Shown here piece after piece: positions 5,501 to 57,371 of a DNA stretch of 64,000 nt. This stretch comes from Trichosphaerium sp. ATCC 40318 (lineage: Eukaryota; Protista; Tubulinea): positions 186,001 through 250,000 of the forward strand of contig JALMLS010000385.1 in the NCBI GenBank assembly GCA_038496445.1. The letters are read 5' to 3'. Positions within the stretch are counted from its first letter, which is position 1. Each line of letters opens with the position of its first letter. The translations under genes and the position numbers were made by a program. The notes under the pieces were generated by a model, which was not told the DNA's origin, ran no database searches, and worked only from the letters and a program-made list of their open reading frames with translations.

Positions 5501-6410
5501 TGTGAACAAATTTATAACTGGAGTGAATCCCTAAATGAGATTGAGAAACAACAGAAGACAAGATATCGAGTGTACCATGTCTGCACCATTTATACGAGCT
5601 TCTCTTCCAATTGTATCGTACACTTGTGTTATCAAAGACATGTTCCAAGATGGTCCTAAACCACAAGACTGTGGAAACACAGTGGCATGATTACCTTCAC
5701 TCTTTAGTTGATAAAAAACACTGTTACGCAACCTCCTGAATGTAGCGCCTAAAACAGCAGTGAGAATTTTATGTATTGATAGGATCCGTAGGTACTAACC
5801 TCAACGTAGAAACCAATAGGGATACCTAGGCGCAAGAACAACGTTAGGCACGTGTTTATGATTATGGAAATACTCACCAAGCCTTGTATTATTCATCATG
5901 TATTGTTGAAGCTTATTCCTTGTTTCTAGAAACGTATAAAACACAACGAATGACTTTAAGGCCTTGTTTGTGTACCGATGATAGATACAGGAGTTCCTTC
6001 GCTTACAAAACGATACCTATAGTACCCGACGCCTGAGAGACATAGTTAATAGACAGAAACACGTGTTTTTTTTGGTTTTAGTGTAAAATACCTGTTTGGC
6101 CATATTCCTGTTCGATCTTCTCAGGGGTTTTACCCTCAAGTAATAGAAGTTGGTTTACCTTGAAGAATTAAGAAATCGTTTCAGTGTAATGGTAGAAAAA
6201 TGAAAACAAAAAACTTTTCGCTTACTTTTTCTTCAAGCGTCATTTTAGAAAGCAAATCATTAACCCGAGTGTTAACAGGTAATGCAGCATTCTTATACAG
6301 CGGGATTGAAGCACCTTTGTGTTTTCAGCGTTAGTAGTACACGTGTTTTGTTCAGGCGTACCTGCTATGCATAACATCGTTACAAGTATCACAAAAAGAC
6401 TGGACGACAT
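2524..6410 (-). CDS. Secreted glycoside hydrolase family 3 (beta-glucosidase/xylosidase-like) with C-terminal Fn3-like domain; >20 short introns
   Basis: Spliced exons give signal peptide MSSSLFVILVTMLCIAG, ATVFPQSCGLGPSWN, DPRFGRQQEG, AKHFAAYG, nucleophile region GVTMSDAND, VILLQND..IAVIGP, GYGLSYSSF and VENTGSTDGDVVAQ. Confidence 0.92.
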
Positions 6411-28505: not shown

Positions 28506-29307
28506 GTGTTTTGCACGTTCAATGTTAAGAGCTATGTTTGTTATCTAATTATACAGACGTAAATAATGAATCAGATGAATTCTGGCTTACTAATAATTTG
28601 TACGCCGTAAAAAGACGGTATTTACCGGTAAAACCAAACGGGAATTTAATGAGATTTCCGTTGTTTTTTCCTAAATTTTTTTGTTGATAATATTCGAAAT
28701 TTTCAGCGGCATATGAGGAGATAGTCAGCGAGGCTATAAACAAGCACTTCTACATAAAGATAATGCATTGATACGGTGGTTTCTACAGAAAAAATCAGAA
28801 TGAAGTGAGCATCTCTGGTACGTAGTAGTGAAGCGTTCTCTTAGCTTTTTATTCTTTTGCGTTGTTTTTCTACTGATGTTTTCTTTCAAGGCTATGACAA
28901 GGAGCTTCTAGCTTGAAACGTTGGTGAAGGGTATAGAGTTCCATACATCACCTACTTCCAGATACGACTACTGGTGAGTAGTTGTTTGAATTGTTCTTTA
29001 CTGACTTTTTTTTGCTTTAGATGTAATGTGGTGTTTGTTTTTAAAGAATGACAACAGTTCGCATGTTAGCTTGTTATAATTCAAACTTTTATTTGTGTTG
29101 CATAACCTACTATACCGCATGTAGCAACTTAAGCATAGCGTTTGGCCTTTGTCTTGTGTAATGATAACCCACTTAAAGAACTCCTATGCTGACAAATACG
29201 TTGTTAAGTTTTTCTTTAAGTCAGACGTCTTTTCAGAAAATCGGTTTTTTTTGGTGCATGTGGCAAAGCGATTTCTATTTACTTCAAAACAAATCAAAAC
29301 GCCTAAG

Positions 29308-30465
29308 ATGGCAACGAAACGCGCGGTACATAATAGTGCGACAATCGTAGCGCCTCCTAGCACCAAAAAGCAGATAGCAGCGTTAGAACCGAATGATCGC
29401 TCATTGTTGTACCTGCCTGTAGAGCTACAGCTAGACGTAATGGATTTAGACCATGATCTATACGTAAAATGGCCTCTACTATCGAAACGCGCTGCAACTC
29501 TGACCAGGTTTGACGCGGAGCTGAATAAACACGGAAAATGGGTAAAAAAAGAAAAAAAAGTCAAATGCGATGGAGATTTCAATTTTAGACCAGGATTGCA
29601 TACACTAGCTATAAAAAATTGGAAACACGGACAAGTTCATGGTGTTTTTAAGGAATTTTACGATAATGGCTGTACTAAAAAGGAAGAAAATTATGAGAAT
29701 GGTGTGATTCACGGAGATTGGAAGGTATATCATTATAATGGGTCTATACATAAGCTATGTCATTATATCAATGGTGAACGAGAAGGAGAGTATAAGAGTT
29801 GGTATGAGGATGATAGAGGAGATGAAGGAAAAGAAGGAGACGGTCAATTATTTGAAACTTGGTTTTATGTTAATGGATTGCTTGAAGGAGAATATAATAA
29901 ATATCACGTGAATAATATCCTCCTTGAAAATTGTTTTTATGTCGATAATTTGAAAGAAGGTGAAGATATCACGTATTATAGAAACGGCTCAAAAAAAACA
30001 AAGGCTTTTTATTCAAAAGGTAACAAGGAGGGTTATTTTAAAGAGTTTCGTGGAATTGATGGTAAACTGGTTGTGGATTGTTTTTATTCAAATGATAAAA
30101 AAGAAGGAGAGTTTAAGAGTTTTTATTGGAATGGTAAACTCAGAGAACATTGTTCTTATCTCAATGGTCTTATTCAAGGTGATTATAAACAATGGTATGA
30201 TAATGGACAGTTATTTGAGGAGTGTTGTTATTTTAATGGTAAGAGACATGGAGAGTTTAAGTGGTGGCTTAAGAGTGGTGAACTGAAGAAGAAGTGTAAT
30301 TACTCAATGGGTAAACTAGAAGGAGAGTTTAAAAAGTGGTATGATAATGGTCAGCTATGGGAAAAGAGTCAATATGTTGATGGTAAACTATACGGTGACT
30401 ATGAGAAATGGTCTGTGGATGGTGAATTACAAGAGCGTAAGACTATTCATAGATACCACATGTAA
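29308..30465 (+). CDS. F-box-like plus MORN-variant (YwqK-like) repeat protein, intronless
   Basis: LLYLPVELQLDVM F-box-like start, then about a dozen repeats of type G.xxEGEYKxWYxNGQL. Confidence 0.85.
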   Translation: MATKRAVHNSATIVAPPSTKKQIAALEPNDRSLLYLPVELQLDVMDLDHDLYVKWPLLSKRAATLTRFDAELNKHGKWVKKEKKVKCDGDFNFRPGLHTLAIKNWKHGQVHGVFKEFYDNGCTKKEENYENGVIHGDWKVYHYNGSIHKLCHYINGEREGEYKSWYEDDRGDEGKEGDGQLFETWFYVNGLLEGEYNKYHVNNILLENCFYVDNLKEGEDITYYRNGSKKTKAFYSKGNKEGYFKEFRGIDGKLVVDCFYSNDKKEGEFKSFYWNGKLREHCSYLNGLIQGDYKQWYDNGQLFEECCYFNGKRHGEFKWWLKSGELKKKCNYSMGKLEGEFKKWYDNGQLWEKSQYVDGKLYGDYEKWSVDGELQERKTIHRYHM

Positions 30466-45051: not shown

Positions 45052-46449
45052 ATGGAAAACACAGAGCTGCGGGTGTTTTATGGTGCCTAGTAATTGGCTA
45101 TTACTGTGCTGCGCGCATAATATTGAAGAGAAATTCGAAGACTTCCAAACAGGTGATAACTGATTCGCAGGTAACGCTCTTTACCAAGCGGGTAAACTGA
45201 TGTTACAATATCTAAGCCAACTTTACAAGAAGATAACTCAGAACAACGCCAAAACACTAGGTAAAATGCCATTTTAACGTTTAGTAGCTGCGTGTCTAAA
45301 CAAAAAACCATTAGAAGATGAGATACATGCCTCACAATCGTATTCTTGCCATCTATTACACCTACCACTTGAGTTACAGTTTGATATTATCGATTTAGAC
45401 TCTAAACTGTACATAAAGTGGCCTCTCTTATGTAAGCAAGCAGCTGTGACAACAAGATTTGATTTTGAGTTAAACAAACATGGGAAATGGAATAAGATTG
45501 ATACTGAGAACTACCACAAGGATATATCCGAATTAGAATGTTTTAAGGAACACTCAGATATTACGGTAAATACATAAAACTCATTTAAATCCACTTTTAT
45601 TTAAACAGTTATTCACAGGTTACTGCTCAGTTTCAGCACGGATGTTATGATGGTGAGTACAAGAAATGGTATTGCGCTGGTTTCTTCTGTAAAGCAAGTC
45701 ATAATTGCCAAAGGCTCCACAGGTCAGACCACAAGCGCCTTCATATTTGGTATTCTCAATGCCTTAAGTCTCTTGATTGGTCTTATGATGAAAAACTATG
45801 GGAATATTATAAGGATGGACAATTAGAAGAGAAGAGGTACTATGTTAATGGTAAACTACAAGGTGAATTCAAAAGTTGGCACATCAATGATCAAGTAAGG
45901 GAGAAATGTTATTATATAAATGGTAAACGACAAGGTGAGTACAATATGTGGTATCTTGATGGTCAGTTGTCAATGCAGTGTTATTATAAGGATGGTAAAC
46001 TAAACGGCAAATACAGAAATTGGTATAAGAATGGACAACTGTACATAGAGAGCACTTACGTCAATCATAAACTTGAAGGAGATTTCATAGAGTGGCATAA
46101 CAACGGACAAATGAGAGAGAAGTATTGTTGCACCAATAATAGACGTGAAGGAGAGTATAGAAATTGGTATTACAATGGCCAATTAAGCAAGCAAGCTATT
46201 TATGTTAACAACAAAAAGAAAGGAGAAGAAAAAACCTGGTATGACAATGGTCAAATCAGAAGTATCCACCAAATTGGTAGGTTTGCTACAGAGTGCAAAG
46301 AATGGCAAAGAGGAGAATTAATTCACTACACCAACCATGTTGTGGGTCCTCGACTTGTTGTGCTTTTATGTGTGACTGTTTTTCCATCAGTTGTGATACT
46401 GATAATTGCAGTGTTATATGCTGGTTTTTATGGCAATGACCGATTATAA
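45052..46449 (+). CDS. F-box-like plus MORN-variant repeat protein with C-terminal transmembrane anchor; start uncertain
   Basis: LLHLPLELQFDIIDLDSKLYIKWPLLCKQAAVTTRFDFELNKHGKW is paralogous to the 29308 gene; MORN-variant repeats; tail LVVLLCVTVFPSVVILIIAVLYAGFYG. Confidence 0.78.
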
Positions 46450-47638
46450 TTCTGTTTGGAAGAAAGATGATGTTGTACCAATTGTAATATGCAAAAAAAA
46501 TTCTTTTACACTGCATCACAATGATATTGTTAGGGTTGATGTTGATATAAAGTAGGTCTAAAGGAAGCGTAAAAACCGAGTTTTGGAGTAAAGGACCAGA
46601 GCGTCTTTAATTTTTTTATTGTTTCTCTCAGTCACCAAAACCACGGATAACATTGTATCCAACACGATGCTTACTAAAATGTCGAAAAAGTCGACAAAAT
46701 GTTGAAGTGATATTGAACTGTTAGCCACAAAGAGAGACAACTGGGTTATAGCGCTCAGTTGCTGCTAGGCTCTGCCCCCAACCACCCCTTACTTACTATT
46801 ATTTCAACTGGGAGTGTAATATCCAAATCTAGATTGGGAAAACAAAAATTATTGGGAAGACAAAACAAACTAGCATGGTCCTTGTGTACTAATAAAGGAA
46901 TTGCAATAGTCATTGGTGACAATAAACTCTAATATAGCAGCATTTATCAGTAGGTGGACGTTTATTCATGGTATGTTTGGAGTATCTATACTTGTGGTCA
47001 TAAATACATCATTTCTCTTGCAACGTTTGTGGCGATTTGGTGAATTCTTGGGTTTGGTTAGGTACCAAACTTACTACAGGTATGTAAAATTACATAAAAG
47101 GAAAATATACGAACTGAGTTCCAGCAAACAGTCGTGTTGGGCAGTAAATGCGCTGTACTTTGGCTAGCAAAAACATTCGGATTGGCTATCCACCATATTG
47201 TCTTTGCTTGATTCTAGTCCATATAAGAAACTATAAAGTATCCACACATCCGCTGGAAAGGCTTGGTTAATTTAGTTTAATGCCAACCTTGCTACCAGAG
47301 CAAAGTTGAGGCTGAGCGCTAGTAAGGCTGTACACTAAGGTCGTGTTAAAAAAAAGTCTCAGATGTTGTGAGGATGTAAAGAAATGGTGTTAAGACAGTA
47401 ATAAGGATGCAATTTGTGCCGTTTTGTCTCACCGTAAAAGCGAGAAGAATATCGAATAAACCAAGAAATTTTTTTTCAAATACGAATTTTGCAATTTATC
47501 CGTTTGGAAGTTCGCTAGATTAAGGATCCTCAGATTTTTAACAGTGACTATTTATTTTTTTCTACAAATCTTTGTACAACTTTAACCGGTATTTTCGAAA
47601 TTAATTAAAGAGTGAGGCTCACTGATTAAAGAAACTTT

Positions 47639-48519
47639 TTATAAAGGAAATTCTTTAGCCTCATTCCACAACTCACCAAATTCCTTTTTCCATAATGTGA
47701 TCGTGTGTTTGGCTGTACTAACATTTAAGTTTTCAGCATGACATTTGTGCGCATGATTAGTGTAGTTATATGCGCCAGAGAGCACGCAAAAATCATCTAC
47801 TATCATGGCTTTTAGATGCATCAGGTGAAAGGGTTTACCCCAAACCTTGACTTCCACAGTTGGCTTTTTACAAAGGTCTTTGAAGTACTCTTTGTACTCT
47901 TCGTACTTGTTTTTTTTTGTGTGCCGGTTTTCTAGGTAAATTGTAGACCAGTCAAGGAGAATACGCATGTCGCAGTCTTTTTTGATCAAAGCGTCCCTTA
48001 TTTCTAGATCATTGAAGGTATACATGGCAATGTCAATTGTGTTTAGAGCTGCACAAATGACTTTTTTAATTATCGCACGTGGTGTGATGGTCGGATTATT
48101 TTTCCTGCGTTGTGAAAAATACGTGTAGTTTTTCTCTTTGAAACCTTGTGGAAACAACGCTGCTGTGATGCTTTCTTTGTTGAGAGAGAGCCTCCTTTTG
48201 CGTGGTCTTTTTGGCTTCATATTTCTTGGTTGTCGGCTTTGTTGTTGTTGTTTTGTAGGAGGTTTTGTCGGCTGTTTCTGGTAACTGTCTAAGTATGCTT
48301 GCGCTGCTTCACGTGTTGCAAATCTTTTGTAATCGGCTTTTGAATACCTAAGAACTTGTTTTTTACAGTCTTCACTATTTATTGTAAGCGTTTATCAATC
48401 ACATTATTGAAAAGATTAGTAATGTACTAGTTGTCGTATATTCCTGGTTGGCGACCAACTGCCACGGCGTAGAATTTTTTTTTTCGCTTGTTCCTTCGTT
48501 TAGATGTTATTTCGGCCAT
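47639..48519 (-). CDS. RNase H1-type hybrid-binding (viroplasmin/Cauli_VI) domain fused to a single-HKD PLD-family nuclease (Zucchini/Nuc-like); ~275 aa, 2 exons
   Basis: Exon 1 48519-48428, GT-AG intron 48427-48375, exon 2 48374-47639, in frame. Reads KFYAVAVGRQPGIYDNYEDCKKQVLRYSKADYKRFATREAAQAYL, then IDIAMYTFND..MRILLD..MHLKAMIVDDFCVLSGAYNYT..HAEN. Confidence 0.88.
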
Positions 48520-49455
48520 ACAGTGTTTAGGATCTTAAATCTGTCTTCAATAATATAATCTTGACTGAGATAAAACAGGATATTATTGTGCGGTTGAAAC
48601 AATGTCAAAATGTCGCCCAAATTTTTGTTTTTCTTGCCAAAAGTCAACGTAATTAAGCTAACTTGAAGTTAAGGTTTGGAACACGGTCAAAATGTCTCTG
48701 AGAGATCGATTTGGAGAACACCAAATATTTGTCATGCAAACTAAAGAATGTCAGTTGAAAGTACGCTACATGGGGAATTCTGTTTTTTCGAAAAACTCTT
48801 TGAAGTGGGTGGTTCGCAGCAATTGATGCTACCTCTAGTGCCTGGATTAAAGAAGGATGATATCTAGTTACGTTTGGACCCTGATAACATGCTCGCAATC
48901 AAGGGAGATACATCCTATAAAACTGCTGCGGACAACGGCGAAGTCATCAGAAGAAGATCGAAGATACTCTGGATCGTTGATGTTGGTTGTTTACAAGAGC
49001 ATATGGCTATTGTCAATTTATCATGCTAGGGTTTGTGCTTAATTTTTTCTTTAGAAAAACCCAATAAAATTATTTATAAATGTTACCATCGCAAAACTTA
49101 CGGCTTTAATACTCATACATAAACTACCAGAAATACATGATAACGTTACGCCTTTCTTTGAGATCGTTGTAGGCATTAGACTTACACATAACCAAAGCGT
49201 GAGAACTTGATAACTATTGATTAATTCTAATCCACTTTTGGTAAAATTTTTTATTAATTGGATAATGTGATAACCATGTAGCATTAACCATAAACAAACT
49301 TCATCAAAAAAATCACAATAGTAGTATTTAAGTTACAATGTTTAAGATTTTTACATACGAGAGTAAGTTTTTTTTTTGGAGAAGTAAATAAGTGGGGTGG
49401 AAAGATGTCATGTGTGGTTACCACCTTTTTTTTTTTTGGAGGGTTTTTTGTTTAT

Positions 49456-52400
49456 CTATTTTTTAAACATTCTAAAATCTGGTGAAATACATTCTCCAAT
49501 GACTGCTAGCCAATCATTTGGAACTACAGGATATTCGAATTCTTGACCAGGTAATGCAAGTGATAACCAACCACTTAAAAAAAAGTGAGAATAAGAAAAA
49601 AATAAGAAATATTTCTTTCTTACCGTAGTTGGAATTCCGCACTGTTTGGTGCGACGTCAATAATCAAAGTTTCACCAGAAAGATCGGATTCACCTCTGAC
49701 TTGGTATATTTGAACTCCGTATACAAAAAATCCACTTCCTCTATCAGTTGTCTGGAAACGACTAGGTCCACTTCTTACAACATTGCTAAAGGAGTAAAAA
49801 ATCAGTATGAAAAATAAGAAAAGTTGACAATCGTCCACTCAAGTTTTATGATCTTTTCTAATAATAATACCCAAGCAGTTTATAGTATAAACATTAACGA
49901 AAGTCTGGGTTGATTTTGGAGCGAATTGGAGATCAAGAGTTTCAGATTTTTGAAAAAAGAAACAACTTATTGTAAAATACTTACTCATAAGTAATATCGA
50001 CTTGTAAGAAATCCCGTGAAGGTATTTCTGTACCAGTATCAATACCGCCGAAAATACGTCCAAATATACGCAATTTTTGTAAATCGGTATCAATTGTAAC
50101 AAATAAACCACCAGAAGAAGCACAATCGAAAGTGACAACCTACAATAAAAGTCAAAACTAGTAAAGAAAAAGAAAAAGAAGAGAAAACCGTTACAAAATC
50201 ATTTGCGTACAGTGCTTTGTCCTTCAAGCATATCCATCCTCAAGCAATAAGCTGGAGGTGCTTCAACAGCATCTGGATGATTCAATAAACGGAAGGTACC
50301 ACGAATAGCTCCGTCAGTGCTGTTAAAAGCAGGACAAGCAGAAGTTGGTGAAACTCTTGTTCCAGGTGTCAGAATCGTTGTTGGCGTTACCACAGTAGCT
50401 GGAGAAAAGAAAGTTGTTGAAGGTGACTCTCTTGTTGATGGAGTCAAAACAGTTGAAGGTGTGATCACAGTAGCTGGAGAAAAGAACGTTGTTGAAGGTG
50501 ACTCTCTTGTCGATGGAGTCAAAACGGTTGAAGGTGTAATCACAGTAGCTGGAGAAAAGAACGTCGTTGAAGGTGACTCTCTTGTCGATGGAGTCAAAAC
50601 AGTTGAAGGTGTTTCTACTGTAGCAGGAGAGAAGAAAGTTGAATCTCCTGTTGCTTGCAACGTTGAAGGGGTCAATACAGTCGATGGTGTGATCACTGTA
50701 GCAGGCGCGAAGAAAGTGCTTGATGGCGTCTGGCTTGTTGATGGTGTCAAAACTGTAGATGGCGTGACAACAGTTGCAGGCGAGAAGAACGTTGTTGAAT
50801 CAGAAGGCGTCTGTAACGTTGATGGCGTCAATACTGTTGAAGGTGTTATTACTGTAGCTGGAGCAAAGAACGTCGTTGATGGCATCTGTCTCGTTGCTGG
50901 CGTCAATACAGTCGATGGTGTGATCACAGTCGCAGGCGAGAAGAATGTTGTCGCTGGTGATTGTCTTGTCGATGGCGTCAATACTGTTGAAGGTGTAATC
51001 ACAGTAGCAGGAGCAAAGAATGTTGTTGAAGGCATCTGTCTTGTTGCTGGAGTCAAAACGGTAGATGGCGTGATAACAGTAGCAGGTGAGAAGAAAGTTG
51101 TGACAGGTGTATTGAGTGACGTAGGCGTTCTAATAGTAGAAGGTGTAATGAATGTCACTGGTGTAAGTGGGAACGTTGGTGATTCTGTAGGTGCTTCTGT
51201 AGAATCTACTGGCGCTTCCGTAGGAGCTTCTGTAGGAGCATCTGTAGGACCATCTACTGGTGCATTTGTTGGTGCCAATGTAGGTGCGTCTGTTGGAGCA
51301 TCTGTTGGAGCATCTGTAGGACCATCTACTGGTGCATTTGTTGGAGCCAATGTAGGGGCTTCAGTTGGGGCATCTGTACCGAAAGGAGCAGCTATTGGGT
51401 TAGGATCAACTGTAGGAGGAACAATGGTTGTTGGTGGGTTTGTAGTTGGTTGCATTGTAGGTACTACAAACGTTGTTGGCACCCTCATAGTTGTTGGTGT
51501 TCCTCTTGTCGGTGGTAATGTTGGTGGCTCAGTTGTAGGTGGGTTTGTCGTAGGTTGCATTGTAGGCATTACAAACGTTGTTGGTACCCTCATTGTTGTT
51601 GGTGTTCCTCTTGTTGGTGGCAATGTTGGTGGTTCAGTTGTAGGTGGGTTTGTAGTTGGAGGGAGCGTTGTTGGAGGAAGTGTTGTTGGTGGACGTGTTG
51701 TTGGTGGGTTTGTAGTTGGTTGCATCGTAGGCATTACAAACGTTGTAGGTACCCTCATCGTAGTTGGTGTTCCTCTTGTAGGTGCTACCGTTGGCGCCAT
51801 CGTTGTAGGTGGGTTTGTCGTTGGAGGGAGCGTTGTTGGAGGGAGGGTAGTTGGAGGACGTGTCGTTGGTGGATTAGTCGTAGGTTGCATTGTAGGCATT
51901 ACAAACGTTGTTGGCACCCTCATAGTTGTTGGTGTTCCACGCGTAGGTGCTACCGTTGGTGCCATTGTTGTTGGTGGGTTTGTAGTTGGTGGTAACGTAG
52001 TTGGTGGAAGTGTAGTTGGTGGGAGCGTAGTAGGTTGCGCTGTTGGAGGCTGTGTAGTTGGTGGACGCGTTGTTGGTGGGTTCGTACTTGGTGGAATAGT
52101 AGTTGGTGGGAGCGTAGTAGGAGCAACTGTTGGTGGTACTGTTGTTGGTGGGAGCGTAGTAGGAGCAACTGTTGGTGGTACTGTTGTAGGTGGGTTTGTG
52201 GTCGGTGGTCGCGTAGTTGGTGGGTTTGTAGTTGGTTGCATTGTAGGCATTACAAACGTCGTTGGTACCCTCATCGTCGTTGGTGTTCTGCTTGTAGTTG
52301 GTGTTCTAAGAGTTGTTGGTGTACGCATTGTTGTAGGCGTCCTGAAAGTCGTTGGGACTACAACAGGTGAAAACACAGTAGGTGGTTGTGTTGTAGGTGG

Positions 52401-55066
52401 AACTACTGGCGCTGCAGTCGTTGGAGGAAGTGTTGTTGGTGGCAATGTAGTAGGGGCAACCGTTGGTGGAACAGTAGTTGGTGGGAGCGTTGTAGGCTGC
52501 ACAGTTGGAGGGAGTGTTGTTGGTGGGCGCGTAGTTGGTGGACGCGTAGTTGGAGCAGCTGTTGGTGGAACTGTTGTAGGTGAGTTTGTAGTTGGAGGAA
52601 GTGTAGTTGGAGGGAGCGTCGTTGGAGGAAGTGTAGTAGGAGCAACTGTCGGTGGTACTGTTGTAGGTGGGTTTGTGGTCGGTGGTCGTGTAGTTGGAGG
52701 TCCAGTAGTTGGAGGTTCAGTAGTAGGAGCAGCTGTCGGTGGTACTGTTGTAGGTGGGTTTGTAGTCGGTGGTCGTGTAGTTGGAGGTCCAGTAGTTGGA
52801 GGTCCAGTAGTAGGAGGCTCGGTAGTAGGAGCAGCTGTTGGTGGTACTGTTGTAGGTGGCAGCGTCGTAGGCGGTAACGTAGTTGGAGGGCCAGTGGTAG
52901 GCGGTGTTGTTATTGGTGGGAGTGTTGATGGCGGAACAGTAGGCGCTGCAGTTGTTGGTGGGAGGGTTGTTGGTGCATCTTGGATTACTAGGAATGAAGA
53001 TAGAACTGGAGGTTCGCAAAATTCAATAGAGCCAGCTCTGTTGAGATATGTTAGGCTTTGGGATTTTTATGCTTATTTGCTTAGTAGATACGTACGTAGG
53101 TCCACGGGCTGTAGATATATAACGCTGGCCACTTCCGAAATTAAACACAGTAGCTGCTAGATTATCTACTGAACCAGGAGCTACGAAAATAGTGAGTCAG
53201 GTAACGTAATAAAAGAATAGAAATGTTTGTTCGAAAAAAACCGAAAGAAACAAGAAAAGCTGATTTGACATTCTCTTACCATTTAATACAACATCGAAAG
53301 TGCATGCTACGGATTCACCTTCACCCAATGTTGCTTGCGCAATAAAGGACCCACCGATAGCAGCTGGGAAACCCTTGATGAAGAATGAGATGAAGAATGA
53401 TATAAAGAAGAAATAATTATTTGATTACTTACATCCGCGCCTACACAACTAGGACTGTTGCTGTCTATGGCACCAACATCTTCAGGGAAAGCGAAAGATA
53501 TGCTCAATCCCTCTGTACTAGCTGGTAAAGATTCATAGTTCATACATGAAATACCGATCGTAATTCGATCACCTGTTGAGATTTTTTTATGTTAGTTTTC
53601 AGAGAGCTCCGTAATAAAAAAAATTGAATACCAGTCCAAAACAAGAAGGCTTTTTTACGCTAATTGCCAATAGGTTTTTTTGATTTAGTTAGATTTTTGT
53701 TTTAATGACATACCCACGTTATAATTCGTTGCATTGGGAGTGATTGTATGCCAGCAATCAGCACTAGGACTCCAACAAATAAAGTCTATGTTGACATCTA
53801 CTGCAGGCGCCAAACCATCTATTAATACTTGTACACCAGTTACAAAAGCATACGCAGCGGCGGGACCTAAGCAGAAAATTAGGCATAAAGGAAAAAAGAG
53901 AAAAATCACGTGATAATAAAACAACACGCCAAAAAACAACAAAACTTTGTAATAAAGAAAAGTAAAAATACATTTGTCAAACAAAGTTTCTTTAAAGAAT
54001 CACGTGCCCTCAAACGGTAAACATAAAGAAATGCCGGGTGGGGCTACTCTTTCAGGATTAAAGAACGTTGACGTAAAAGCGCCTAACAAGGTATCCGTAG
54101 TGATGCTGATACTGTTATTCTGGTCCGAGTTGATTACAAATATATTCCAGCAATCTAAAGGTTACCATTAGTTTTTGCGTTTGATAAAAAAATGAAATGG
54201 TAATTGATTCAATACTTTATAAAAAAAAAGATGGAAGCGTCTATTTGCGTTTAAGACTAGTTTTACGTCCAGACGTGAAAAAACAAAAAAGTTATGAGTG
54301 CACAAATAAATCTGGAGATAACAAAGAGAGTAGTGTATAAAAATCAAAAAGAGGATATATACGGGTTTAACCACGTGATAAAAGGGCCGAGAATCATTTT
54401 AAAAAAAAATGCAAGGATATCTGTCCGTTTTATCTCAAGGCCCTAAAAGGTAGTCTATGAAAACTACCTCTTCTAGGTCCCTTTAACACGTGCGATTTTG
54501 ATTACCAATAAGCGTTCACGGCGATCTCAAATGACGAGATTTTAAACACTTTACTGCTTTCAAAGGTAATGTTCTCGCTCACAGGTTCAAAAAAAAGACA
54601 TTACCACGCTACGAGAGTAGCAACGGCAACAAGAAAAAGAGTTTAAAGAAAGAAAAAAAAAAGTCGCGAAAAAAAAAAAAATATCTAAGCCAAGATTGTA
54701 CTTACCGCAACCTTCTGCGCCAAGGTTTAGTGGAGGAAATATATCACCACCGTTTGGGCCTGTATATTCCAATAGACAATCACCCATCAACTGAACGTCC
54801 GAATTTAAAGAGAACCTGCCCTGAGGGGAGATTACGCAAGCAATACGCGTTTCATCAAGATTGGCGCTTTCAAGTATTGCAGTTAACCTTCTCTCGGATC
54901 CAATGAATGTGCCGTTACTGATTACAGTAGTGCTTACAACATTATTGTCTGGTGTTGCGCGGCTTACTTGAAAGTCTGTAAGAAAGTCTAAGAGTGGTGG
55001 TATTGTCTGTGAAAACACCACTGTAGGTATCAACACAATAGCGAGAAAGAGTATGAACGTCTTCAT
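49456..55066 (-). CDS. Large secreted mucin-like protein: signal peptide, globular N-terminal region, ~900-aa Thr/Pro repeat stalk, globular C-terminal domain
   Basis: Signal MKTFILFLAIVLIPTVVFS; repeats PPTTx, RGTPTTMRVPTTFVMPTMQ, APTDAPT and TTFFSPATVITPSTVLTPST; C-domain FRLLNHPDAVEAPPAYCLRMD; terminal exon ends ...PDFRMFKK*. Confidence 0.85.
50340..52980. repeat. Coding tandem-repeat array (15-nt PPTTx units and longer degenerate units)
   Basis: Visible periodic GTTGGTGG/GTAGTTGGA and GTTGAAGGT..ACAGTAGC units. Confidence 0.9.
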
Positions 55067-55668: not shown

Positions 55669-57371
55669 CTACTTTGATGTATGACGCGGTTCTACGCGTA
55701 ATTTTAGAAGTGTCCGTTTGAACATATTGTTCAAGCCTTTACTAGGTCGTGGAGACGTAGGTGGTGTTCCATCATTATCAGCTTTAGGTTTTTTCTTTTC
55801 TTTTCCAGGTGTTGGATACTTTACGGCTCTTCTTACTCTTCCATTTGGATTAAATTCCTTAAACTGTCCACAAAGCTGACCATGATGGTATTTACACTGT
55901 TTCTTTAGGTTACCCGAGGAGTACCACTGTTTGTAGTCTCCATGTAGTTTACCTTCAGCATAGTTTGACGAATACCACAAGAAACGCCTATGTAAAATGT
56001 GGTGTTAGTGGCTCATGTTACAATCTCAAAAAGCCCGAAATTTCAACTTATTTGCAAAATGCTTTGAGCATTTGATTCTCCCTGGCGCGTACCTCTGGTG
56101 CCAGTAGTTATATTTTCCATGTAGTAAGTCATTATGGTATTGTGCTTCAATTTTCTTGGATCCATCAGCGTACCATGCTTGGTAATTACCATGTTTTAAT
56201 CCATTTCTTTACATCCAGTAAGTACTAAATCTTTCAAAAAAATAAAAAAAATCTCCCTGAGATGTTTTACATTCTCAAACAGAAATTCTACTTTAAATTC
56301 ATCAACAAGTATATTCTACCCTCTCAAGGCATTCAAATGAAGTACTAGAAGGTACTCACGAAAATCAACAGGCGGTACGAACGAAGGTAAAATGAAGAAA
56401 AATGAAACTGGAATTTTTTTTCTTCTCTTTTTTGTCAATTTTTTCATGAAACAAGAAACGTACTTGAAATTACACAGCCTAACAAGCTTCCCGTTACCCC
56501 ATTCATGTGACTGACCCTCTTTCTTCCCTTTCTTATAAACACAACGCTGTTTCATCTTCCCTCTACTATCCCAAGCAGTATAAACGCCTTGTCTATTACC
56601 TGCTTCATAAGAAGCTTTTATAATTATTCTACCCCTTCTATTAAACCGTAACCACCTCCCATGCCTTTAAAAATCGTGTTAGTTATTATATTACGCTGTT
56701 TTGGTAGTTTTTTACTCAAGTGTTGCAACGCTTGAACAGCAACGGCTTTTTTCTTCAAAAAAAAAGAACGATTTTGCCAAAAAAAGGATACTGTACCTCC
56801 GAAGCAAAGAGTCAAACCGTGTAGTGGTTGCAGCACGTCTACATAGTAGTGGAAACTTAATATAAAGCAAATGGCTTGCAACCATAATCTTCTTTTGAAT
56901 AAAAAGCGGAAGCGATAGTAAACCGTTCTCTACGAATTTAATAAGCGTGAAAAGGCCAACAACAAAGAAACAGCGTTATTCTAAAATGAAAAAAATGCAA
57001 AACGCACCAAATTCGTCCTCATCGAAATGCGGTTTTGTTACTTTGTTGTTCTTGCGAATAATTGATTTACGACGTTCAAGGCGAGCCGTTCTACAAGTAA
57101 TTAAAGGATTGTATAGAAATGATAGTATTTGTAACTTTGCCGTTAGATTAACGGTAGAGTTCTAGTACCTGGGTGTTTTACGGCGGAGATTTCTTGGTGG
57201 AGACACTTTTTTGTCGTACTCGCGTTGGAGCTCGTCAAATGTTCTTGCAGTCATTGTAGAACGTCTATATGAATGAACCAACCGCGAAAGGTCTGTCAAG
57301 TCACCTAACGGAGGAACATCGATAGCCATAGACTTTGGTCGTTCCCGCGGCGCTGTAGGCTGTTCAGACAT
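55669..57371 (-). CDS. MORN-variant repeat protein, multi-exon
   Basis: Exons encode YKKGKKEGQSHEWGNGKL, GLKHGNYQAWYADGSKK and YAEGKLHGDYKQWYSSGNLKK, with low-complexity basic termini. Confidence 0.7.

Follow-up and report, generated by a model that had tools for sequence, protein, structure and literature searches.

To our knowledge, the RNase H enzymes are, among well-characterised nucleases, the only ones that are aimed at RNA:DNA hybrids through an HBD (hybrid-binding domain). The HBD family, to which RNase H1 and viroplasmin belong, binds dsRNA besides RNA:DNA hybrids, and laboratories engineer proteins with a fused HBD to serve as R-loop sensors and tools. Other described systems are relevant here through the phospholipase D (PLD) fold: the single-HKD nucleases Nuc, of the Salmonella plasmid pKM101, and NucT, of Helicobacter, which are secreted or periplasmic; Zucchini/PLD6/MitoPLD, the endonuclease of piRNA biogenesis; the FAM83 proteins, non-catalytic CK1 anchors whose DUF1669/SACK1 domain has a degenerate HKD motif; and BfiI, SauUSI and the bacterial PLDc_2+HHH_3 proteins, in which a PLD-fold nuclease owes its targeting to an added domain that binds nucleic acid. 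In BfiI, each dimer has one active site. We confirm here that a small two-exon gene of an amoeba-like protist joins an HBD of the RNase H1 type to a complete single-HKD PLD domain.

The window, by which we mean the whole stretch of DNA that was analysed, comprises 64,000 nucleotides of Trichosphaerium sp. ATCC 40318 (contig JALMLS010000385.1:186,001-250,000), and the gene, with all the parts located below, is on its minus strand. The coding part of exon 1 (48428..48519) extends from the ATG at 48519 through Asn30 to the first two bases of the codon of Tyr31, and contains a basic cluster, KRRNKRKKK, and after it HBD residues 1-15. A predicted GT-AG intron of 53 nucleotides in phase 2 (48375..48427) interrupts codon 16 of the HBD, that of Tyr31; the coding part of exon 2 (47639..48374) supplies the last base of this codon and all that follows, from the remainder of the HBD through the linker to the PLD domain, up to a TAA stop. 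The spliced coding sequence is 828 nucleotides long and encodes 275 amino acids. A sequence-only reading of this locus had claimed that removing the intron adds an in-frame N-terminal HBD to the open reading frame of the PLD domain: the sequence is exactly so, and Pfam matches both domains.

An in-frame TAG overlaps the donor at the end of exon 1 (48428), and only one of the 47 frame-keeping GT/GC-AG combinations, the splice 48427-48375, rebuilds a gapless HBD of 44 amino acids. The domain, whose coding span including the intron is 48290..48474 (residues 16-59), is recognised by Pfam in two halves: exon 1 matches positions 1-16 of the Cauli_VI profile (PF01693) with E 2.6e-6 and 28 bits, and exon 2 opens with a match to positions 18-44 (E 5.2e-6, 27 bits), each half-match being above the curated cut-off of 21 bits. 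The one profile position left over, 17, is taken by the split codon TA|T (Tyr). The sequence-only reading had proposed a HMMER check with PF01693 and PF13091 (PLDc_2), a missing Cauli_VI hit being named as grounds against it: both profiles are matched. A phase-2 intron is also found in the same HBD codon of two other genes of this genome, its RNase H1 (contig C53) and a gene that joins an HBD to a 3CxxC domain (contig C32).

The rebuilt domain aligns with no gap, over 44 amino acids, with both of these other HBDs, 21 of the 44 residues being identical to those of the genome's RNase H1, and its exon-2 half aligns to the solved HBDs of human and yeast RNase H1 (3bsu and 1qhk). In the human HBD, the substitutions W43A and KK59/60AA each abolish hybrid binding (PMC10639055). 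The positions of human Trp43, Phe58, Lys59 and Lys60 are occupied here by Tyr31, Tyr46, Lys47 and Arg48: the replacements, including that of the hybrid-discriminating Trp43 by a tyrosine, are conservative, but the residues are not identical. We regard the domain as a putative binder of RNA:DNA hybrid or dsRNA.

The gene is transcribed, and exon 1 is included in the transcript. The cDNA contigs at the locus come from three runs of two studies and are confined to 47541-48618. An X2 contig (48419-48618) carries 20 extra letters whose reverse complement is GTATCAACGCAGAGTACGGG, which we take to be the core of the SMART template-switch oligo plus GGG. This adaptor-bearing contig sets the 5' end of the mRNA 99 nucleotides upstream of the exon-1 ATG, at about 48618; the resulting 5' UTR (48520..48618) has no ATG and carries an in-frame TAA 18 nucleotides upstream of the start codon, and the first AUG of the observed RNA is that of exon 1. 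Since the adaptor junction falls on a genomic GGG, this 5' end could be a strand-invasion artefact, with the true start perhaps further upstream, but a start upstream of 48618 would still take in exon 1. Transcripts starting at the internal ATG 48220 without exon 1 would, for the sequence-only reading, have counted against the two-exon gene; the observed cDNA 5' end lies instead upstream of exon 1. The 3' end is given by another X2 contig (47541-47897), which delimits a 3' UTR (47541..47638) with an AATAAA at 47556-47551, 10 nucleotides ahead of the end.

The spliced junction 48428|48374 was sought among the cDNA contigs, and no contig crosses it. The sole contig that reaches the donor, the one that bears the adaptor, extends 9 nucleotides into the intron, which means that unspliced RNA (or DNA) was present in that library. 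Since the cDNA coverage is very thin (depth of about 6), the lack of spliced contigs tells little.

The PLD domain (47666..48064) is identified by Pfam, by an AF2 model and by Foldseek. The match to PLDc_2 covers profile positions 3-132 of 132 (E 2e-15, 57.2 bits); the SACK1 profile (PF07894) also scores above its cut-off, at 29.8 bits, but the two families are in one clan, so overlapping matches are expected. The catalytic motif block (47729..47818) starts with H217-L-K219-AMIV-D224 (47795-47818) and continues with G231-A-Y-N234 and E245-N246: the HKD motif is complete, and present in one copy in the 275 amino acids. The residues H, K, D, G, N and E-N of the motif align with those of Nuc (1byr) and of mouse MitoPLD, and H, K, D, G, N and E are invariant or nearly so across 48 homologous sequences, in whose alignment nearly all relatives have a serine at the position of Ala232. 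The AF2 model, which covers the PLD domain alone, has a mean pLDDT of 93. Submitted to Foldseek, it retrieves FAM83A/B, NucT, Nuc and Zucchini with E-values of 1e-11 to 1e-8; the best matches are the DUF1669 domains of FAM83A and FAM83B, NucT, Nuc and Zucchini matching with E 1e-10 to 1e-8 and TM of about 0.7; for Nuc and NucT, E is 1e-10 and TM 0.7-0.76. A complex prediction for the PLD homodimer obtains a score of 0.02, which weighs neither for nor against a dimer.

In the phylogenetic tree, the gene is sister to the paralogue L002 (97/89), within a clade of six members that consists of paralogues from the same genome and two protist-like proteins. The motif of the HBD-PLD gene is the most complete of its clade: the catalytic histidine is missing from both L002, its closest paralogue and a pseudo-enzyme, and L007, a cousin. 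From residue 60 up to the first strand of the core, where a zinc-binding Cys/His cluster was looked for, the translation is free of Cys and His. A Paulinella relative (P0124) carries a cluster C-x6-C-x4-C-x3-H, and a separate small PLD with an anchor (L017) is encoded in the same genome as the HBD-PLD gene. The label "Zucchini-type", given by the sequence-only reading, thus holds for the fold and the motif, by Foldseek and by alignment, and is not supported for orthology, given the lack of an anchor and of a zinc site and the placement in a protist-like PLD clade; the tree contains no bona fide PLD6 sequence, so that Zucchini orthology is unsupported rather than formally rejected.

The two domains are separated by a basic linker, some 65 residues long and reaching from residue 60 to about 125 (48092..48289), which is rich in Lys, Gln, Pro and Arg and free of Pfam matches; it contains the internal ATG 48220. 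The protein as a whole is strongly basic, with 57 K+R vs 29 D+E. The two basic NLS-like stretches that had been noted earlier are located at residues 7-15 (KRRNKRKKK, 48475-48501) and, in the linker, at residues 84-92 (KPKRPRKRR, 48191-48217); these clusters suggest a nuclear protein. A hydrophobic anchor was sought over the 275 amino acids and none was found, the top Kyte-Doolittle mean over 19 residues being 1.33. With KRRNKRKKK and the HBD at the N-terminus, this agrees with the earlier statement that the Zucchini mitochondrial anchor is lacking. The layout announced by the sequence-only reading, that of RNase H1 with the catalytic domain swapped for a PLD, is borne out by Pfam, alignment and fold: an HBD, a disordered basic linker, and a single-HKD PLD.

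We now turn to the occurrence of this architecture elsewhere. Word-based protein searches, with exon 2 and confined to the HBD part, give no match, and the profile of the six-member clade gives a single one, which is PLD-only. An exhaustive HMMER search against 1.84 billion representatives yields 446 matches, the best of which, at 29% identity, is a bacterial multi-PLD protein (Elusimicrobiota). Among the best 150 of these 446 matches, phmmer with the spliced HBD detects an HBD only in P0084, which consists of four tandem HBDs with no PLDc_2 match. The ESM Atlas, searched by features and by shape, returns PLDc_2 clusters only, PF01693 being in none of them; a scan of metagenome contigs gives three loci that are distant, with 30% identity or with an HBD alone; viral contigs and phage records contain no relatives; and an exact look-up of the 193-amino-acid open reading frame finds no record. 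In these database searches, no orthologue of the HBD-PLD gene was found. In the literature, we found no paper that pairs Cauli_VI with PLDc_2, or a hybrid binding domain with a phospholipase D nuclease, and no paper on Cauli_VI domain architectures; the papers on PF01693 that were found are unrelated. The architecture had been called unfamiliar, and the HMMER, word-based, Atlas and literature searches reveal no other instance.

The relatives of the two modules within the genome offer a view of how the fusion arose. The true RNase H1, on contig C53, consists of an HBD and an RNase_H domain in the same layout as HBD-PLD; the HBD-3CxxC gene, on contig C32, consists of an HBD and a zinc ribbon that has no catalytic motif; the gene seems to have a GC-AG intron. 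Because the position and phase of the intron are identical, the HBD probably came as a DNA copy, two exons long, of the module that is also in the genome's RNase H1, and the presence of the same intron position in the HBD-3CxxC gene indicates that in this lineage the HBD has been shuffled as a module. From the shared intron position and the tree, we infer that the PLD protein before which the HBD was placed belonged to a protist family whose members are small and have a single HKD motif. A decayed and rearranged duplicate is found 26 kb away (C39:260411-260927), in which a piece of the HBD exon adjoins PLD pieces with 79-85% nucleotide identity. An origin by insertion of a mobile element or a virus was considered and rejected: the G+C of the gene matches that of its flanks, its neighbours, MORN and mucin-like genes, are of host type, the predicted intron is spliceosomal, and there are no viral relatives in the viral contigs and phage records.

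What might such a protein do? The explanation that we favour, with somewhat more confidence than doubt, is that this is a real, transcribed nuclear gene, and that its product, an HBD, a linker and a PLD domain in one chain, would be a dimer that cuts beside A-form duplex independently of metal ions. Two chains would pair through their PLD domains, as in Nuc, NucT, Zucchini and BfiI, their two HKD motifs making one active site. The two HBDs would keep the dimer on the A-form duplex, an RNA:DNA hybrid or, more weakly, dsRNA, and the PLD site would cleave a phosphodiester bond close by, with no need of metal ions and by way of a phospho-histidine intermediate. The likeliest targets would be ssRNA or ssDNA flanking a hybrid (R-loop, reverse-transcription intermediate or primer) in the nucleus. 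Against this explanation stand the contig that runs on into the intron, a pseudo-enzyme as closest paralogue, the non-catalytic DUF1669 domains of FAM83 as best fold matches, the alanine where nearly all relatives have a serine, and the tyrosine in place of Trp43. We thus infer a role as a hybrid- or dsRNA-directed, metal-independent nuclease; the scope is one gene in one genome, and the function of the protein is predicted from sequence and model. A further reading, which we put forward tentatively and consider rather doubtful, is that the HBD recognises the hybrid, that its RNA strand stays uncut, and that the displaced DNA or a flanking single strand is cut instead: this would be a second, mechanistically distinct class of enzyme for the processing of R-loops or reverse-transcription intermediates, and could serve in defence against retroelements or DNA viruses, or in R-loop-triggered DNA breakage.

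Other explanations have to be weighed against this one. Sequence alone does not tell dsRNA from hybrid as the substrate, and it is conceivable, though not very likely, that dsRNA is the target of an antiviral or small-RNA-processing nuclease, the HBD acting as a dsRNA-binding module as in caulimovirus P6 and some HBDs. That the family binds dsRNA too is established knowledge, the residue equivalent to the hybrid-discriminating Trp43 is a tyrosine, and Zucchini, an animal single-HKD nuclease of matched fold, acts on RNA. However, the DNA-phosphate-contacting K59/K60 are kept as Lys-Arg, and Phe58 as Tyr, and the two basic clusters speak for a nuclear protein. The same domains could also form an adaptor with no catalysis, in which a protein-binding scaffold of the FAM83/SACK1 type is tethered, with its partner, to hybrids by the HBD. 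The top Foldseek matches, the SACK1 score of 29.8 bits, the loss of the catalytic histidine in the sister L002 and the cousin L007, and the clearly non-catalytic HBD-3CxxC protein of the same genome all point that way; we nevertheless find an adaptor unlikely, given that H, K, D, G, N, E and N are all kept, unlike in the paralogues, and that PLDc_2 scores 57 bits vs 30 for a profile of the same clan, where overlap is expected.

There is also the question of whether the HBD exon belongs to the functional product at all. If the intron were retained, the first AUG would open a peptide of 30 amino acids, and the working protein would be the PLD of 193 amino acids that starts at ATG 48220, which is the start of the open reading frame in the program-made track. 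The contig that continues 9 nucleotides into the intron, and the failure to find a spliced one, are in line with this, but at the depth of about 6 the latter tells little; moreover, the frame of the HBD is intact on both exons with its key residues kept, the splice restores the frame exactly, the intron position matches that of two paralogous HBD genes, and the observed 5' end is upstream of exon 1. No other AUG precedes that of exon 1, so an unspliced mRNA would yield the PLD only by reinitiation, and we judge a PLD-only product quite unlikely. Since enzymes acting on lipids are found in the PLD superfamily too, and MitoPLD is named a cardiolipin hydrolase in PDB titles, one may finally think of a phosphodiesterase acting on nuclear or membrane lipids, like phospholipase D or cardiolipin hydrolase; with no membrane anchor or hydrophobic segment, a fusion to a nucleic-acid-binding module, and nucleases as the nearest small single-HKD folds, this is very improbable.

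A comparison with the known systems places the favoured HBD-PLD nuclease among them. Nuc and NucT share with it one HKD motif in a chain of about 150 residues, with H, K, D, G-x-x-N and E-N aligned, but the identity is only about 20%, and they have a signal peptide and no targeting domain, whereas the HBD-PLD protein is predicted to be intracellular and possesses an HBD and NLS-like stretches. Zucchini is likewise a eukaryotic single-HKD nuclease fold (4gel, 4ggj) with aligned motif residues; the HBD-PLD protein lacks its mitochondrial outer-membrane anchor and its zinc-binding Cys/His cluster, and is probably not an orthologue, since it groups with paralogues of its own genome and two protist-like proteins. 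FAM83 DUF1669/SACK1 is the best structural match, and SACK1 exceeds the Pfam cut-off, but the HKD motif, degenerate there, is complete here. SauUSI is among the Foldseek matches, and a PLDc_2+HHH_3 cluster among those of the Atlas: with these and BfiI the principle of the appended targeting domain is common, but targeting is by a B3-like, helicase or HhH domain rather than an HBD, the context is prokaryotic restriction or defence, and only the PLD fold is shared. In the HBD-3CxxC gene, the same HBD module, with the intron at the same place, again serves a protein other than RNase H, its partner being a non-catalytic zinc ribbon and the intron apparently GC-AG; with their common intron, the two genes make a clean case of exon-level domain shuffling in a protist.

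The layout is also that of RNase H1, in which a Cauli_VI/HBD at the N-terminus and a nuclease domain at the C-terminus are joined by a flexible basic linker, and whose copy on contig C53 has codon 16 interrupted by a phase-2 intron just as here. The differences lie in the HBD-PLD protein having no match to RNase_H (PF00075), its C-terminal domain being PLDc_2 and not the metal-dependent RNase H fold; in the lack of a mitochondrial presequence; and in the expected chemistry, which would be metal-free, through phospho-histidine, in a probably obligate dimer. The protein offers a candidate, open to testing, for an enzyme that a hybrid triggers to cleave the non-RNA strand or the single strands at its flanks, and could be a useful reagent if it proved to be an EDTA-resistant, hybrid-stimulated nuclease. 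As no protein or paper in the searches shows this pairing, nature may here have a second means of directing a nuclease to RNA:DNA hybrids; if so, the targeting module of RNase H1 would have been re-used by evolution with a different catalytic chemistry.

On the minus strand of the window, an ATG at 48519 opens a frame of 30 codons that closes at a TAG overlapping the GT at 48427, and a second open frame begins after the AG at 48375 and runs to the TAA stop at 47641-47639. The sequence itself and the reconstruction of an RNase H1 hybrid-binding domain (HBD; Cauli_VI, PF01693) place a 53-nt GT-AG intron at 48427-48375, in phase 2, inside HBD codon 16. Joining 48428 to 48374 yields a CDS of 828 nt and a protein of 275 amino acids. 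Pfam matches exon 1 to positions 1-16 of the Cauli_VI profile (E 2.6e-6) and exon 2, in its opening 27 residues, to positions 18-44 (E 5.2e-6): the missing position 17 is exactly the split codon TA/T, and chance cannot explain such profile support for the join. Among all 47 GT/GC...AG pairs that leave the frame open from the exon-1 ATG through the stop, only 48427-48375 restores a gapless HBD of 44 residues. The splicing is based on homology logic rather than on RNA. The gene model bears out the sequence-only reading, which had proposed an in-frame HBD N-terminus gained by removing this intron; the profiles of both domains, PF01693 and PF13091, match the gene. We hold the gene and its HBD-PLD architecture to be real with high confidence.

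Logan contigs from three runs of two studies match this locus at 100% identity; all lie within 47541-48618, and the same runs have none in the flanks. The contig covering 48419-48618 extends by 20 letters that read, in reverse complement, GTATCAACGCAGAGTACGGG, which we take to be the SMART template-switch oligo core followed by GGG. These adaptor letters show that a cDNA made from a minus-strand RNA has its 5' end 99 nt ahead of the ATG. Since the adaptor junction falls on a genomic GGG, this end could stem from strand invasion, and transcription may in truth begin further upstream. Whichever 5' end holds, exon 1 is transcribed. The 99-nt leader contains no ATG and has an in-frame TAA 18 nt 5' of the start codon; on the 3' side, one contig ends at 47541, 10 nt past an AATAAA. 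The 5' contig extends 9 nt inside the intron, so that some unspliced RNA or DNA is present in this thin library. The contigs establish the transcription of exon 1, and at a depth of about 6 none of them crosses the 48427-48375 splice junction. The only sensible product of the transcribed gene joins an intact HBD to a single-HKD PLD domain that is likewise intact, and it lacks a membrane anchor.

The HBD occupies residues 16-59. Its exon-2 half aligns with the solved RNase H1 domains of human (3bsu) and yeast (1qhk), with Tyr31, Tyr46 and Lys47-Arg48 at the positions of human W43, F58 and K59-K60, all four substitutions being conservative. In the human domain, hybrid binding is abolished by W43A, and also by KK59/60AA (PMC10639055). 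The genome, 70 Mb in 642 contigs with the window at C39:186001-250000, holds only two other HBD loci: a canonical RNase H1 on contig C53 (L009:1474-2080, plus strand), with HBD, basic linker containing KKRK, and RNase_H, and a gene combining an HBD with a 3CxxC zinc ribbon (C32:372912-374084, or L010:718-1890, minus strand). The three domains align without gaps, with 18 to 21 of 44 residues identical. In C53 and C32 the interruption falls in phase 2 within HBD codon 16 (Trp), matching the position and phase in the window gene, the introns being 42 nt (GT-AG) in C53 and 72 nt in C32 with an apparent GC donor (TG/GCACGT...CTTAG/G), against 53 nt (GT-AG) in the window gene; the RNase H1 gene has at least one more intron ahead of its catalytic domain. 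Because codon and phase are common to all three loci, the intron was presumably inherited with the HBD module, and the HBD therefore came to the window gene as genomic DNA.

The PLD domain matches PLDc_2 over practically the whole profile (E 2e-15, 57 bits; positions 3-132 of 132), overlapped by a weaker match to SACK1 (PF07894) of the same clan. An AF2 model, computed from an alignment of 48 sequences, has a mean pLDDT of 93; Foldseek against the PDB returns FAM83A/B DUF1669, NucT, Nuc and Zucchini (E 1e-11 to 1e-8, TM about 0.7), and the best solved relatives by sequence are Nuc, MitoPLD and NucT. Residues H217, K219, D224, G231, N234, E245 and N246 align to the Nuc catalytic motif and are invariant or nearly so in the 48 sequences, the sole deviation in the window protein being Ala232 in place of the usual Ser. 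The assignment to a Zucchini/Nuc-type PLD stands as to fold and motif residues; orthology with Zucchini/PLD6 finds no support, since the protein lacks the anchor as well as the zinc cluster and its placement with PLD6 is not supported.

The two domains are joined by a linker, from residue 60 to about 125, in which Lys, Gln, Pro and Arg are abundant. The 275 residues comprise 57 K+R against 29 D+E and contain no hydrophobic segment or membrane anchor, in agreement with the earlier observation that the Zucchini mitochondrial anchor is lacking. Both basic stretches noticed earlier are present, KRRNKRKKK at the N-terminus and KPKRPRKRR in the linker, and these clusters suggest a nuclear localisation.

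Single-HKD PLD genes form a small family in this genome, together with fragments: L002:1351-2136 (plus, C41), L007:1480-2178 (minus, C44), L017:1360-1893 (plus, C1), and the identical genes L005:1096-1905 (plus) and L006 (C356:3887-4279 and 5754-6146), which form an inverted pair. In a maximum-likelihood tree whose bootstrap is not fully settled, L002 is the sister of the window gene (97/89), and both group with L005, L007 and two protist-like database proteins, P0050 and P0075, in one clade apart from bacterial sequences (93/82). Within this clade, no PLD relative carries an HBD, and the window gene has the fullest catalytic motif: in L002 the catalytic His is replaced by Arg (R-M-K versus H-x-K), and L007 lacks both His and Lys (R-S-N). 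These two are likely pseudo-enzymes, comparable to FAM83, in one small protist PLD family. The paired genes, which a gap of about 1.5 kb separates on their small contig and which have a short Cys-rich ORF immediately upstream, encode 269 residues with a Glu-rich, coiled-coil-like N-terminus and an intact HDK motif. The 177-residue L017 product keeps an intact HGK...D motif and begins with a hydrophobic segment, either a signal or an anchor; if this genome encodes an anchored or secreted Nuc/Zucchini-like nuclease, L017 is the better candidate.

The most economical history sets a two-exon HBD module before one member of an older protist PLD family. A duplicate of the gene, decayed and with an internal inversion, is found about 26 kb away, beyond the window (C39:260411-260927, or L003:1372-1888). 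It consists of a 33-nt remnant of exon 1 (85% identity) that leads into intron-like sequence, an inverted 5' part of the PLD (282 nt, 83%) and a direct 3' part (178 nt, 79%); the PLD pieces are interrupted by stop codons. Since this copy carries pieces of both exons, HBD and PLD were already one unit at the time of duplication.

The surroundings of the gene are ordinary host DNA and show no sign of mobile elements or viruses. A mucin-like repeat gene rich in Thr and Pro (50199-53160, minus, 767-aa ORF) has tandem units of 75/150, 165 and 87 nt in a region of strong GC skew; its Gly/Val-rich mirror ORF of 947 aa on the plus strand is probably a repeat artefact. ORFs with MORN-type W/Y-x-N-G-Q repeats lie at 29149-30465 (plus), 45946-46449 (plus) and 55669-55980 (minus), the first alone confirmed by Pfam (MORN_2).

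In a word-indexed search of 5.8 billion clusters, neither exon 2 nor the HBD portion of it found a match, and a profile of the six-member clade found one protein, PLD-only. HMMER, run exhaustively against 1.84 billion representatives that include entries of nr, UniRef and EukProt, gave 446 matches, the best a bacterial multi-PLD protein at 29% identity; among the 150 matches listed, only P0084 has an HBD, in four tandem copies and with no PLDc_2 match. This protein (242 aa, from an ENA metagenome contig of 2481 nt), in which no catalytic domain is detected, is a natural counterpart to the engineered tandem-HBD R-loop sensor (PMC10639055). Searches of the ESM Atlas by features and by shape brought up only PLDc_2 clusters, some with other nucleic-acid-binding modules such as HHH_3, and none joined to PF01693; scans of metagenomes, viruses and phages found nothing closer, and full-text literature no paper combining HBD/Cauli_VI with PLDc_2. 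The impression that this architecture is unfamiliar from characterised proteins thus holds throughout these sources. It is a new, lineage-restricted pairing of two well-known modules, with good support for the gene itself; independent fusions may exist with a PLD too distant to score, or among the remaining 296 weak matches.

Single-HKD PLD nucleases such as Nuc, NucT, Zucchini and BfiI are homodimers with one active site built from two HKD motifs, and cut phosphodiesters without metal via a phospho-histidine intermediate; the HBD binds RNA:DNA hybrids strongly and dsRNA more weakly. We favour, somewhat better than evenly, a hybrid-directed nuclease: two chains would dimerise through their PLD domains, forming one catalytic centre with two HBDs on long linkers around it. 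As the dimer would present two HBDs near this centre, hybrid-containing structures would recruit the enzyme, and the most plausible target of cleavage would be single-stranded RNA or DNA next to the hybrid.

A nuclease directed at dsRNA is an improbable though not negligible alternative. A non-catalytic adaptor like FAM83 is rather less probable: the pseudo-enzyme paralogues of the clade and the rank of FAM83A/B among the fold matches favour it, but the catalytic motif of the window protein is complete. Retention of the intron, into which the 5' contig reaches, would give a PLD-only product; beside the two Cauli_VI halves that meet at the split codon, this seems slightly more doubtful still. 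That the protein acts on lipids we consider very unlikely.

For the window protein, an identity with FAM83-type pseudo-enzymes is set aside, the motif being intact. In the EukProt set, the Paulinella micropora protein P0124 (270 aa) has a single-HKD PLD after a C-x6-C-x4-C-x3-H cluster, and so adds a further eukaryotic protein resembling PLD nucleases, here combined with a zinc finger of the RNA-binding type. The window protein belongs to two domain families, Cauli_VI and PLDc_2. For want of an RNase H domain it does not count as an RNase H1, but it shares the layout of that enzyme, with HBD, linker and nuclease-type domain in order, and it would share with BfiI-type enzymes the principle of a PLD nuclease aimed by an added binding domain.
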